From NCBI RefSeq assembly GCF_006345805.1, contig NC_043004.1:72602001-72666000 (forward strand): a DNA stretch of 64,000 bases. The letters are read 5' to 3'. Shown here piece after piece: positions 10,711 to 61,376 of the stretch (its first letter is position 1; every line of letters begins with the position of its first letter). The DNA comes from Octopus sinensis. Lineage: Eukaryota. The notes beneath the pieces were generated by a model. The model saw only the letters and a list, made by a program, of their open reading frames with translations, was not told the origin of the DNA and made no database searches. The position numbers and the translations under genes are program-made.

Positions 10711-10803
10711 CTGTATTTTATGCACCATTTTAATTCCGCACACCGCTTTCTACTTGATATTTTATAGGTCACGATTCTATAACAGCCCTTCCAACATTTG
10801 CGC
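10711..10803 (-). CDS. Gene L exon 2: N-terminal half of the EMI-like domain ([30 protein letters not shown])
   Basis: TTTTTTTCTCTTTTCAG acceptor, AG|GTAAAT donor, 93 nt, phase 2 to 2, joins exons 1 and 3 in frame. Confidence 0.88.
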
Positions 10804-11379
10804 CTGAAAAGAGAAAAAAAATGGGGGATATATTTCTTTATATGTGTATATATATATAATATATATATATATATATATATATATATAATATAGCTGGCGT
10901 TATATATATTAATATAGCCAGCTGTTAATATATATAGGGGGATATATTTTTTATATGTGTATATATATATATTATATATTATATAAGGGCGTGTATAAAG
11001 CCTTGGGCAAAATATATATATATATGAATATATATAAATATAGGTGTATATTTATAAAGATATATGTATGTATATATGTGTGTAGGACCGTTTGTATATA
11101 TATTATATATAATATATATTATATATATTATATACAAACGGTCCTACACACATATATACATACATATATCTTTATAATATACACCTATATTTATATATTC
11201 ATATATATATATATACTTTCTCTGCCCCAAGGCACATTTCTAACACGCCAGCTGAGTTTAATTCGTCTAAGTCGAAAGACGCCTCTTGTGATGTCCTGTT
11301 ATTATTATTATTATTATTATTATTATTATTATTATTATTATTATTATTATTATTATTTTCAGTTTTTATTTTTATAGTG

Positions 11380-12230
11380 TGCGTTCACTTCACTACCGAG
11401 CGCAGCTCTGTGTGCCTTAGGTATGTGCTGTGATTTGTTGTGATGCTCTGATGGTTATTGTATGGAAAGTGTTCTGCGTAGGATGTGTGCAGTGCCTAGT
11501 AGTGCAATTTTCTGTATGTTATATGTGTTTGTAAGTCCTGGTGTTTTTGTTATGTATTTGTCTGAATATTTTTTATCATGCCTATTGCACCTACTATGAT
11601 AGGAATTGTTTCTGTTTTTAGATTCTACATTCTGGTTACCTCTATTTCCAGGTCTTTGTATTTTGAAAGTTTCTCCATTTCTTTTAGAGACACATTGTCA
11701 TCTGCCGGTATTGATACATCAATTAGAAAGCATTTTTTTCTTCATGATCTCTGACAACTATATCTGGTCTGTTAGCCTTAATTTCTCTATCTGTGTGTAT
11801 CGGCATATCCCTGAGTATGGTTGCCTTCTCGTTTTCTGTGACCTTTTCTGGTGTGTGCCTATACCATCTTTTTTCTGTTGTTATTCCATAATGTTGGCAT
11901 AGCTTCCAGTGTATGTAGGTTCCAACTATGTCATGTCTGTGAATATATTCCTTCTTAGCCAGGACTGGGCAACTAGAGATAATATGATTTATTGTTTCTT
12001 GTCCATCTCCAAATATTCTGCAGTTACTTGCTATATTTCTTTTCATTACATGTTTTTGGTAATTTCTGGTGGAGAGGCTTTGATCTTGTGCTGCAATTAA
12101 AAATCCCTCTGACTCTGCTTTGAGTCCTGAGCTTCTCAACCATTGCTGGGATTTTTCTTTGTCTATTTTGCGTTTAGTTTAGTCCAGTATTTACCATGAA
12201 GGGGCTTTTCTTGCCATCGTTTTATCATGG
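11380..12230 (-). mobile_element. Dong/R4-like LINE 3' fragment
   Basis: GLKAESEGFLIAAQDQ, degenerate CCHC knuckle, ANRPDIVVRD endonuclease motif; (TTA)n flanks. Confidence 0.88.
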
Positions 12231-12699
12231 TTCGATGCTGTTCTATTTTTAGTTTGGATTTCATTTATTATTATTATTATTATTATTATTATTATTATTA
12301 TTATTATTATTATTATTATTATCATCATTATTATTATTATTGTTTTTTCGTATTATTTTTGTATTTATATTCGTGTAACATCGTCCGTTTTTCCGTCCTT
12401 GTTTCATATACATTCGAAGCTTTTTTCCCAAGTAATCTAATGCGCTTAGCTTAGTTTTTCCTTGGGGCTGGCCAAATCGGAGCTATCTCAAGATTAATCA
12501 GCCGAAATTGCGAGGATGATCCGGTTCTTGACTGAAGATTGAAGGCTTCGAACGACCCGTCCGTGTTTTTTTGTATCGTCTTCTAAATGTTTTGCGTTCT
12601 TGTCCCAATTTGTATATATATTATATATATATATATATATAACACAAACACATGCGCGTGAACATATATATGGATATATATAATTGGAGATATGAATCC

Positions 12700-13140
12700 T
12701 TAAATCCTTAAAAATGTTTTATCCCTAAGGCCGCGGCCATGCTGGGGCACCACCGCTGAATGAGCTACACTAATATGTGAATCCACCTCTGATACGTGGC
12801 ACTTGATCAACAAGGGAGTTCGATGCCGCTGCCCGCATCTGTGTCTCCTGTCGTGAGGTAGGTTCATCTGGGACCTCCGACAAAAAGAGATCCAGTTTAG
12901 TTTTAAAGAAACCCACATCCACACCATGTAAGTCTCTCAGGCATTTAGGGAGGATGTTAAAGAGCTGTGGTCCTCTGAAACCCAAGCTGTTGCAGTATCT
13001 GGACCTGTATTTTAATGGTGATGTTGGAATCTTTGGCACCATGCGGTGGCGCCCCGTTCTGCGGTTGGGATAACTTTGAATGCCAAAGTTTGGGACAAGA
13101 CCCTCCAGGATTTTCCAGATGTATATCACCGCATAGCTCT
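12700..13140 (-). mobile_element. CR1-like LINE 3' end
   Basis: Reverse complement of 38020-38448; YCNSLGFRGPQLFNILPK. Confidence 0.88.
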
Positions 13141-13366
13141 CCGCCTTATATATATACATATATGGATATCTATGTATATATTATATATATATATATATAT
13201 ATATATATATATTTATAATATATATATATATATATATATATATTCAACAATATAAGGAATGGCCCTAATAGGCCATTCGACTCACTAGAAAGAGCAGCCA
13301 AACTCAAACCGCTAAATAGTTGTAATTCTGAAATTGAAAGAGAAATAAAAACATTTGCCCTTTTCA

Positions 13367-13461
13367 TCTCCGGACTATGCATAGTTTCGACAAAACTTTG
13401 TAAACAAATTAATTAAATTAAATTAAATTTATTTACAACTTGCGTGTCTCGTCAGCAGAGA
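13367..13461 (-). ncRNA. Type I hammerhead ribozyme
   Basis: TCTCTG-CTGACGA-GACA...TGTC-GAAACTATGCATAGTC-CGGAGA. Confidence 0.82.
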
Positions 13462-13750
13462 AGCCGAGGACGAGTATATGGTAAACAAATTGATTACATT
13501 AAATTTATTTACAACAGGCGTGTCTCGTCAGCAGAGAAGCCGAGGACGAGTATATGGTAAACAAAAAAATTAAATTAAATTTATTTACAACTGGCGTGTC
13601 TCATCAGCAGAGAAGCCGAGTACGAGTATATGTCCACGAGGCGACGGCAAAGAAGCCTCCAGTCTATATGCTCTAAATTTTCAAAAGTTAGAGCATATAG
13701 ACTGGAGGCTTATTTGCCGTCGCCTCGTGGACATATACTCGTCCTCGGCT

Positions 13751-59457: not shown

Positions 59458-59885
59458 GGATCTTTTCGGTTTGAACGTCAGTTTTTTTCTCGCGGTGTCA
59501 TGAAATTGTCACCCATAATTATGACCCTAGAATCGATCTATTGCATTTCAGTCTCTTTTAGGGTTAGGGTTAGTTAGGGTTAGGGTTAGGGGTGGGGGAA
59601 GGGCATCTTTTTTTCGTCACAAATGTAAATAAACCCAATCTATTTCTTAAACGAGGGACATATCCAAACGGCACATAATCTTTTTTAACTCAATGGACGT
59701 CATCGATTGGTTGAAATTGCAGAAATTGAAGAAAAAAAACAAATATCTTACAAACCATAGAATTTTCTCAATAAAGCCAAGAGAAAAAGATGTTTTATAA
59801 ACACATTCTACCAGTATACGAAGTTTAAAATTTTTTAGTTACCTAGAAATTATGTTAAAAACTGCCGTTCAAACCGAAAAGATCC
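59458..59885. mobile_element. MITE with ~29 bp TIRs, an 8-bp TSD and internal (TTAGGG)n
   Basis: GGATCTTTTCGGTTTGAACG termini; CACTTGTC at 59450-59457 and 59886-59893. Confidence 0.9.
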
Positions 59886-60066
59886 CACTTGTCTTTCAGA
59901 ATTGAATATTCTTGTGTTTATTTCAATGGCTAAACACTGTATACACTGAGTTACTTTAATCTCGGTATTGGGAACACACTCGACAAGAAATGAAAACAGA
60001 ATTGAAAGAAAACAATGATAATGATAATAATGATAATACATGCAATAACTTTATTTTACTTTCCAG

Positions 60067-60183
60067 ATATAAACGAGTGTAAAGGCAGGAATCCATGTAG
60101 ATACGGTAGATGCCAGAACACGCCAGGATCCTACAAATGTCACTGTAAAAAGGGGTATTATTTCAACGGGAGAACATGTATTC
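60067..60183 (+). CDS. Gene R exon 4: calcium-binding-type EGF domain (DINECKGRNPCRYGRCQNTPGSYKCHCKKGYYFNGRTCI)
   Basis: TTTTCCAG acceptor, GTAAGT donor, 117 nt, phase 1 to 1, six Cys, DINEC and CxNxxxxYxC consensus. Confidence 0.93.
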
Positions 60184-60774
60184 GTAAGTAAAATTAAAAT
60201 AACATTAACAACAATAAATATACAATTACACAAGTAATTAACTGTAAACTATCGTAATAGTAATAGTAATAATAATAATAATAATAATAATAATAATAAT
60301 AATAATAATAATAATAATAATAATAATAATAATGATAATAATAATGATGATAATAATAATGATGATAATGATAATGTTAATGATAATGATAATAATAATA
60401 GTAATAATAATAATGATAATAATAATAAGAAGAAGAAGAATAACAACATTTGGTTGTGATGCATGTGCCTGGTGTACCCTTATCAGATGGGTAGTCATGA
60501 TGGGTATACTGGGCTTCGTATATTTTACCCCAGTGTCACTTTGATGGCATGCACTGCTCTCTCACCCAATCATAATAATAATAATAATGATAATAATAAT
60601 GATGATGTGGATGATGATGATACTTGCCCTGATGCAGTACCAGGCAGTGATTGTCATGGCTTCTGATCTTAACTGATTGGAAGTATTCTCAAGTACAGTG
60701 TTTTGTCTTGGTGCAAAAGACAAGCTACATCAAATATTCTGCGCAATACCGCAAATTTGTTAATTGTTAAGGAC

Positions 60775-61205
60775 GACGATGATGATGATGATGATGGTGA
60801 TAATGGTGATGATGATGGTGATGATGATGATGATGGTGATGATAATGATGGTGATGATTATGAGGATTATGATGGTGACGGTGATGATGATGGTGATGGT
60901 GATGATGATGGTGATGATGATGATGATGGTGATGATGATGGTGGTGATGATGATGATGGTGATGATGATGATCATGGTGATGATCATGGTGATGATGGTG
61001 ATGATGATGGTGATGATAGTGATGATCATGATGGTGATGATAATGGTGATGATAATGATGGTGGTGATGATGATGATTATGATGATGGTGTTGATGATGA
61101 TTATGATGATGATGGTGATGGTGATGATGATGATGGTGATGATAGTGATGATGATGATGATGATGGTGATGGTGATGATGATAATGATGATGATGATGAT
61201 GATGA
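60775..61205. repeat. (GAT/GGT)n compound microsatellite
   Basis: Direct inspection; lies in intron 4. Confidence 0.9.
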
Positions 61206-61256
61206 CGGCGGTATATGATTTGTATATACGTGCAATAAATTTGCTTTACATTTCAG

Positions 61257-61376
61257 GGGGAACAAACGCGTGTAAACGGAAACCGTGTGGTAGACACGGT
61301 AGATGCCGCAACGTGGGAAGATCATACAGATGCTATTGTAACCGTGGGTACCGTTTCAACAGGAAAACGTGTGTTG
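61257..61376 (+). CDS. Gene R exon 5: EGF domain (RGTNACKRKPCGRHGRCRNVGRSYRCYCNRGYRFNRKTCV)
   Basis: TTTCAG acceptor, G|GTAAGT donor, 120 nt, phase 1 to 1; the gene probably continues beyond the window. Confidence 0.93.

Follow-up and report, generated by a model that had tools for sequence, protein, structure and literature searches.

The window analysed here, a stretch of 64,000 nucleotides of the Octopus sinensis genome (C8:72602001-72666000; genome of 2.72 Gb in 13,516 contigs), contains the 5' halves of two genes, L and R, for secreted cysteine-rich proteins. Both gene copies came to light in six-frame scans of the window, which looked for acidic open reading frames (ORFs) and for the motifs CC..W and C-x3-C. 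Our own splicing of the window placed R on the plus strand and L on the minus strand, head to head and divergently transcribed. All junctions of R and L in the window are canonical GT-AG. In both genes the intron after exon 1 and the one that divides the cysteine module are in phase 2, and all boundaries thereafter are in phase 1. Positions are window coordinates unless marked otherwise, and slashes inside the short sequences below mark the splice point. R consists of the following exons.

26172-26746, plus strand: R exon 1, with ATG, signal peptide (residues 1-20), acidic tract and the motif NET, GNST...EGESLA, ending TTR/R at the phase-2 donor CG/GTAAGT
29372-29470, plus strand: R exon 2, first half of the cationic module with eight cysteines (C1-C4), phase 2 to phase 2
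50867-50943, plus strand: R exon 3, second module half, YKR...C-x2-CC-KGW-x6-C, with phase-2 acceptor and phase-1 donor like the canonical EMI exons of the genome
60067-60183, plus strand: R exon 4, calcium-binding EGF domain (DINEC...)
61257-61376, plus strand: R exon 5, EGF domain without Ca-binding motif, phase-1 donor
64279-64398 (window-equivalent, beyond the window), plus strand: R exon 6, calcium-binding EGF exon of DINEC/DVNEC type
67389-67505 (window-equivalent, beyond the window), plus strand: R exon 7, same type
68618-68734 (window-equivalent, beyond the window), plus strand: R exon 8, same type
71654-71889 (window-equivalent, stop at 71889), plus strand: R exon 9, terminal, sixth EGF domain and Pro-rich tail

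The phases of the nine exons are consistent from ATG to stop and give a product of 525 amino acids (aa). Its signal peptide is MKSLVLFLFLFVVGLWVTEG, with cleavage predicted after G20 by the -3/-1 rule. The 173 aa that follow contain 71 D/E and 4 K/R and end in TTRR. Downstream of this junction, 332 aa comprise the 8-Cys module, six EGF domains, of which five are calcium-binding (cbEGF), and a Pro-rich C-terminal tail of 38 aa without membrane anchor. The product displays five D-x-[DN]-E-C starts, five consensus sites for Asp/Asn hydroxylation and three N-glycosylation sequons. The net charge amounts to -67 in the N-terminus, to +20 in the 55-aa module, which is devoid of any D/E, and to +39 in the remainder, so that the cationic body (module and remainder) reaches about +59. 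The terminal exon is homologous to the C-terminus of the Octopus vulgaris model P0005 and to the terminal exon of L.

An earlier note on this DNA had ended the R product at exon 5 (61376). This exon closes in a phase-1 donor and, therefore, the gene goes on past the window with four more exons; the 'VGK*' seen at this place is G/GTAAGTAA, an intron read-through. Between TTRR and the read-through stop lie 138 residues with 43 K/R, 2 D/E and 20 Cys. The note had the length and the D/E right and counted one K/R more (44).

Fragments of long interspersed nuclear elements (LINE; RVT_1 and Exo_endo_phos) fill introns 2 and 3 of R, at 30155-32187 (minus strand), 35393-36019 (plus strand) and 54760-55353 (plus strand). 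Intron 3 further contains a purine-rich, low-complexity simple repeat at 52444-53150 with long K/R/E/G frames in all three plus-strand frames; the AT skew is 0.355 and the GC skew 0.17 in 52001-56000. Intron 4 harbours a D-rich ORF at 60673-61215 (plus strand), an open poly-Asp/Gly frame of 181 aa with more than 100 genomic copies at about 85% identity. As it is intronic, out of phase and a genomic repeat, it was rejected as a coding exon.

Gene L follows the same plan on the opposite strand.

18494-19062, minus strand: L exon 1, signal peptide and acidic tract as in R, ending VPKR-L at a phase-2 donor
10711-10803, minus strand: L exon 2, first module half
4333-4409, minus strand: L exon 3, second module half (CCNGW...C), phase-1 donor
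C8:72579453-72579677 (left of the window), minus strand: L terminal exon, 73-76% identical to that of R

Left of the window, L has further exons of EGF_CA type and its terminal exon. The minimal model comprises seven open exons (440 aa) whose splice sites are canonical and whose phases agree; at least 250 aa of it lie downstream of the junction. Together, the pair spans about 94 kb. The span given in the earlier note, 10711-61376, thus cuts both genes and omits L exon 3, which carries the CCxGW...C end. The 57 residues with 15 K/R and 2 D/E counted after VPKR were found exactly; a product of 57 residues was rejected on account of the phase-1 donor at 4333 and the downstream EGF exons, and both products had been taken too short. 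Splicing did confirm the predicted order of signal peptide, D/E-rich tract, TTRR (R) or VPKR (L), K/R-rich 8-Cys module and EGF, and secretion with extreme charge segregation is supported. The first EGF_CA exon of L, left of the window, lies in a tandem triplication on the minus strand with a unit of about 4.4-4.6 kb; the copies lie at 9281-9406, 4853-4996 and 60-185 of the segment window-equivalent -10000 to 0, and the middle one is frameshifted. Either the exon was genuinely amplified or the assembly is in error here, and L may carry one to two copies of that EGF.

Both modules fit the pattern C-x3-C-x13-C-x(5/7)-C-x13-C-x2-CC-x2-W-x6-C and are split by a phase-2 intron, as already described in the earlier note. 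The module measures 55 aa with 8 Cys, 12-21 K/R and no D/E, and paralogue modules always carry a charge of +12 to +20. The EMI signature CC-x-G-[WYF] with a last Cys is present as CCKGW-x6-C in R and CCNGW-x6-C in L, and the CCxGW...C end is invariant in 8/8 family sequences. EMI domains are found as a single copy at the N-terminus of secreted proteins (PMC11949838). Correspondingly, each protein contains a single module, and no folded domain stands between it and the signal peptide with the disordered tract. Three canonical EMI genes of the genome (C2:90.17-90.19 Mb, C1:194.2 Mb and C3:54.8 Mb) have a C-terminal half-domain exon with phase-2 acceptor and phase-1 donor, and in R and L, too, a phase-2 intron precedes the Y-x-x-Y-[KR] strand and the next boundary is in phase 1. 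The split codon of the C2 gene is that of the 4th residue after the paired Cys, likewise in R and L (C-x6-C-STL-[R]-VVYK...CCPGW in C2, C-x7-C-TKF-[S]-LVYK...CCKGW in R and C-x5-C-IKY-[R]-TGYK...CCNGW in L). This shared intron position and phase is the most telling point for a link to EMI. Because the CCxGW end is kept and the intron position and phases (2, then 1) are common with canonical EMI genes, the module is likely to be a shortened, K/R-enriched EMI derivative, while it is not an EMI member by the criterion of the hidden Markov model (HMM).

Other features of the module depart from the EMI canon. It has eight cysteines versus six to seven, the canon forming three disulfides; its N-terminal spacing is C-x3-C-x13-C versus C-x(9-15)-C-x(14)-C, and an extra Cys stands two residues before CC. 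The Pfam EMI profile (PF07546) detects canonical EMI exons elsewhere in the genome, but not those of the L/R family. The designation EMI-like in the earlier note holds in part, for the CCxGW end and the intron position. In profile comparisons with hhalign, the module matched a set of nematode MEGF6 EMI domains weakly and locally, in the CCxGW region only (probability of 42-44%), and with the octopus canonical EMI exons added the value was 27% over the same region. A probability of 90% over 34 columns was obtained only when four human EMI sequences entered by hand were added, and is a lead and not a test. To our knowledge, no experimental structure of the EMI fold is available. From an alignment of six sequences, AlphaFold2 predicted a long antiparallel beta-hairpin (predicted local distance difference test, pLDDT, of about 80). 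This agrees with the twisted antiparallel sheet of EMI and EMI-like domains (PMC11949838; bioRxiv 10.64898/2026.05.13.724420) and was counted toward the EMI link. A sequence search of the PDB with the module profile gave no match, and Foldseek against the PDB with module and EGF together retrieved EGF domains only.

In six of eight modules a Ser/Thr is located five residues after the second Cys, in the first predicted strand (L CYRIVTY; P0003 CFKTKSY). Canonical EMI domains have an O-fucosylated Thr in 'CAYVHT' (PMC11949838), which this residue recalls, though the two positions may not be equivalent. If the EMI derivation holds, the 55-aa module would be a minimal version of the EMI fold; if not, it would be an orphan Cys-rich domain.

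The only Pfam families detected in the full R and L models were EGF_CA, cEGF and EGF. EGF_CA (PF07645), for which a profile check had been proposed in the earlier note, scored 109 bits over five stretches in R and 80 bits in L, and the C-x-[DN]-x4-[FY]-x-C hydroxylation pattern is present. A homology search with residues 170-329 retrieved EGF matches only, in a coral and an apicomplexan. The C-terminal module of fibulins (PF22914) is present in the true fibulins matched in the R homology search and was not detected in R, L or the paralogues; an assignment as fibulin orthologue was rejected on this ground.

With full-length R as query, O. vulgaris models were identified that are about 51% identical and bear the names 'fibulin-1-like' and 'wall 2-like'. 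They begin with the same signal peptide and, like R, have an acidic N-terminus, cbEGF arrays and the 8-Cys module. A family profile built from three paralogue module sequences was then scored against 1.84 billion representative proteins. Five true matches were obtained, all from Octopus, with E-values of 1e-10 to 7e-23, which in a collection of this size places the module far beyond chance. They are P0003 and P0007 of O. vulgaris, P0123 of O. bimaculoides, P0122, known by its UniParc identifier and probably also from O. bimaculoides, and P0124 (XP_029651374.2), recorded as Octopus and probably from O. sinensis. The names that automated annotation gave to these five have no relation to one another. 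Among the proteins searched, the family is restricted to Octopus. Signal-peptide, module and terminal exons revealed at least 12 loci in the genome, on C26, C27, C10, C9, C5, C1, C11 and unplaced scaffolds. The scheme of the earlier note would have fallen if exon 1 were not joined to the Cys-rich exons; in the family it is joined, as the NCBI/ENA paralogue models splice exon 1 to the module exons with intron positions as in R and L, and P0007 mapped on its O. vulgaris contig does the same.

A giant paralogue with an EGF array was observed at C10:4111600-4156700 (minus strand), with its signal exon at 4156586-678, its module exon at 4142189-260 and several dozen near-identical EGF exons downstream, mostly spaced by about 450-1000 bp. 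The short annotated members P0123 (195 aa), P0124 (227 aa) and P0122 (379 aa) end in '...C[VI]GIG...' or '...CKGKNMF...'. These ends look like read-through of phase-1 donors, as would arise from isoforms with intronic polyadenylation or from truncated models. Misleading automated names (fibulin-1-like, LTBP2-like, ADGRE2-like, 'wall 2-like') have so far hidden the family. No paper naming family accessions or tying such proteins to an octopus tissue was found in the literature.

The polyanionic tract of R is largely encoded by a minisatellite within exon 1.

26377-26613, plus strand: coding minisatellite of R exon 1, whose 18-bp unit (ESEDEG type) recurs imperfectly about 13 times and accounts for the bulk of the polyanionic tract

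L has such a minisatellite as well, likewise imperfect, with a unit of 18 bp and about 13 copies. Across the loci of the genome, the acidic tract is very variable in length (exon-1 ORFs of 89-272 aa). Two unrelated acidic repeat types occur in the family, ESEDEG in R and L versus ESVDEDES in C27, C10767 and P0122. For these reasons, the polyanionic tract is an add-on that was expanded at least twice. Nearly every member has the glycosylated motif NET.DSGNST.EGESLA ahead of the junction, and its conservation implies that this segment is constrained.

The junction itself is basic in most members, and a dibasic motif is missing in about one third. A KR/RR or RxxR-type motif stands 1-3 residues upstream of the first Cys in R (TTRR), L (VPKR), P0003 and P0124 (TKR), P0122 (RRSR) and P0007 (RHRK). 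No dibasic motif was found in P0005 (PPSGTC), P0123 and the F/LRPP loci (C10, C27:21.03M and C10815), and exon 1 closes in a single R at five loci (SSSR, LKSR, AALR). The dibasic site of the earlier note is therefore present in R and L, but it is no constant of the family. The furin consensus includes a P4 Arg, which TTRR and VPKR lack. Due to its composition, the 55-aa module of R contains eight dibasic pairs, and 13 more follow further on. Processing at the basic junction appears possible in L and R, and is not a family-wide design.

The history of the pair was reconstructed by comparing the two copies, which share an inverted homogenised tract.

18476-20189: left arm of the tract, L exon 1 and about 1.1 kb upstream
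24982-26764: right arm of the tract, R upstream region and exon 1

When the repeat is set aside, the two exon-1 sequences differ by 4 mismatches in about 500 bp (about 99% identity), and the identity collapses 12 nt before the exon-1 donor. In the remaining exons the synonymous divergence (dS) is 0.34-1.25. The near-identity of promoter and exon 1 set against this divergence points to gene conversion confined to these parts. The inverted duplication is thus old, and only its promoter and exon 1 have been made alike by recent gene conversion, of which the pair offers a clear example. It follows that the likeness of the two acidic pieces does not count as separate evidence. Change has been fastest in the module, with 35% amino-acid identity, a nonsynonymous divergence (dN) of 0.51 and a dN/dS of 0.62, which indicates relaxed or partly diversifying selection and is no proof of positive selection. 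The EGF and terminal exons (dN 0.14-0.23, dN/dS 0.11-0.61) differ less, and the EGF exons are under purifying selection.

Many short L/R matches outside exon 1 are LINE fragments and other repeats. Between the two genes, at 20399-22732 (plus strand), two long ORFs of 245 and 532 aa gave no Pfam match; by eye, a reverse transcriptase-like 'FDIASFYPSI' and a GIY-YIG-like 'VYSYIGAS' suggest a Penelope-like retroelement.

By their gene models, L and R are complete paralogues encoding large secreted proteins. With somewhat better than an even chance these are of matrix or secretion type, and could be described as Ca2+-stiffened block-polyampholytes with a polyanionic tail and a polycationic body. 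After its signal peptide, each protein has an N-glycosylated, intrinsically disordered polyanionic tract that arose when an 18-bp coding repeat expanded. Next come a compact polycationic domain with eight cysteines, which most likely derives from EMI by shortening, and a rod of four to six mostly calcium-binding, K/R-rich EGF domains with a short Pro-rich tail and no anchor. Outside the cell, the protein may serve as a Ca2+-stiffened component of a matrix or a secretion, where the polyanionic partners of the cationic body (about +59 in R) could be sulfated glycans, mucins or other matrix. The anionic tail (about -67) would be a built-in counter-ion that keeps the body soluble in the secretory pathway (in cis) and/or would drive head-to-tail electrostatic assembly (in trans). 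Cutting at the basic junction may happen in L and R, outside the conserved design of the family. Of the two alternatives offered in the earlier note, the charge-segregated matrix protein is closer to the evidence than the convertase-activated effector.

Several points weigh against this reading. The Pfam EMI profile matches no member at E<=10 (R and L modules, three paralogue modules and full proteins), the family profile drew no canonical EMI protein from the 1.84 billion representative proteins, and Foldseek with the module alone against the PDB returned generic hairpins at E>3 only. Near-balance of charge is limited to members with a long tract, P0003 and P0005 having -9/+33 and -2/+22, respectively, and the role as counter-ion or in assembly is one that we infer from composition only. 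The exact R and L models are absent from a collection of 15 billion proteins, the R homology search gave no close match, and no transcript, proteomic or tissue evidence was obtained for L or R. Finally, exon 1 closes with a basic residue at most loci, which leaves room for processing.

A rival reading is a convertase-activated precursor, in which the acidic pro-piece masks the cationic body in the secretory pathway until a dibasic-specific convertase removes it at TTRR or VPKR and frees an EMI-like/EGF effector with an antimicrobial, adhesive, venom or mucus function. The basic motifs near the first Cys in R, L, P0003, P0124, P0122 and P0007, and the K or R as last exon-1 codon at most loci, would suit such a scheme, but P0005, P0123 and the F/LRPP loci have no dibasic motif, the SSSR, LKSR and AALR loci offer a single R, TTRR and VPKR do not fit furin, and dibasic pairs are frequent by composition anyway. 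The family is expanded and clustered, and its signal peptide and NET.DSGNST.EGESLA motif are conserved while the module evolves fastest; against this, the dN/dS of the module does not exceed 1, and the identity of the pro-piece between L and R reflects gene conversion. Short annotated forms of 195-266 aa with the module and two EGF domains do exist. In R, however, the part after the junction is no peptide with its 332 aa and six EGF domains, and other members have dozens of EGF exons, which does not agree with a small cationic mature peptide. A small Cys-rich peptide of the defensin/toxin type was rejected for the same reason, the post-junction product being 332 aa in R and at least 250 aa in L. 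A precursor of this kind is considered rather unlikely.

Repeat-expanded D/E-rich tracts are typical of acidic biomineral proteins, and the 71 D/E in 173 aa of R, generated by repeat expansion, the independent expansion of acidic tracts in two subfamilies and the five calcium-binding EGF domains would also be expected of a calcium- or mineral-associated matrix protein, one anchored in the organic matrix by its cbEGF rod, with Ca2+ or the mineral surfaces of statolith, stylet or egg case as ligands of its poly-D/E tract. Yet the N-terminus is short and weakly acidic in many members, the strongly cationic body has no obvious place in such a protein, and the literature gave no expression or proteomic link to mineralised tissue, which makes this explanation quite improbable. 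Still less probable are untranscribed or decaying duplicates, the open exons being leftovers of a recent family expansion without product. The absence of both models from public protein sets, the introns packed with LINE fragments and the frameshifted extra EGF exon copy in L would be expected of silent copies; but each exon (9/9 in R, 7/7 in L) is an open frame, the splice sites are canonical and the phases agree, no exon reaches a dN/dS of 1 at a dS of 0.3-1.25, and the promoter regions were kept identical.

A bolder version of the block-polyampholyte reading, which we regard as unlikely, would see in these proteins an octopus invention, where the repeat-expanded polyanionic pro-region neutralises a polycationic, fast-evolving body of mini-EMI and cbEGF domains until its release or unmasking outside the cell, the body then being an effector on polyanionic targets. 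Binding to microbial surfaces or mucus, or charge-driven coacervation into adhesive or egg-coat material, may be named as tentative examples. If true, the EMI fold would have been put to a new use, and cephalopods would have gained a secretory innovation specific to their lineage.

Apart from this version, the family illustrates how a standard matrix architecture of EMI and cbEGF domains was probably remodelled into a protein of extreme charge blocks, with the minisatellite building the anionic end and K/R enrichment the cationic end. Secreted families restricted to one taxon are also the first to consider for tissues peculiar to cephalopods, among them suckers, skin, venom gland and egg coats.

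Among known systems, proteins of the MEGF6 and EGFL7/8 type are alike in being secreted and in having a single N-terminal Cys-rich domain ending in CCxGW...C, followed by EGF or cbEGF domains. Their EMI domain is of about 70-75 aa, in contrast to the octopus module of 55 aa with 8 Cys and no D/E, and the octopus proteins have a long polyanionic tract before the module; there is no orthology. With fibulins, fibrillins and LTBP, the family shares cbEGF arrays with D-x-[DN]-E-C and the hydroxylation consensus (best matches of 35-41% identity over the EGF part), but not the fibulin C-terminal module, TB/8-Cys or anaphylatoxin domains. The 'fibulin' and 'LTBP' labels of the paralogues reflect the EGF repeats only.

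In MAGP-1, an uncleaved adaptor on cbEGF-rich microfibrils, the N-terminal half is acidic, and the C-terminal half is cationic and contains all the cysteines. The Cys-rich matrix-binding domain of MFAP2/MAGP-1 and MFAP5 was recently classed as EMI-like by structure (bioRxiv 10.64898/2026.05.13.724420). MFAP2 and MFAP5, which are small secreted matrix proteins, thus resemble the octopus proteins in their EMI-like Cys-rich domain; they differ by lacking EGF domains and the CC motif, which the octopus module keeps, and by much smaller charge blocks, and no sequence relation was detected. In pro-defensins and eosinophil proMBP, an anionic N-terminal piece about equals the net charge of the following cationic Cys-rich part and the junction is basic, as in R. 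Unlike the octopus proteins, they have one small mature domain and a documented cleavage, whereas R has a multi-EGF rod of about 330 aa and the junction motif varies within the family. The closest known architecture is that of EMI and EGF proteins such as MEGF6 and EGFL7, and the closest charge logic that of MAGP-1/MFAP2 and of precursors with an acidic pro-piece.

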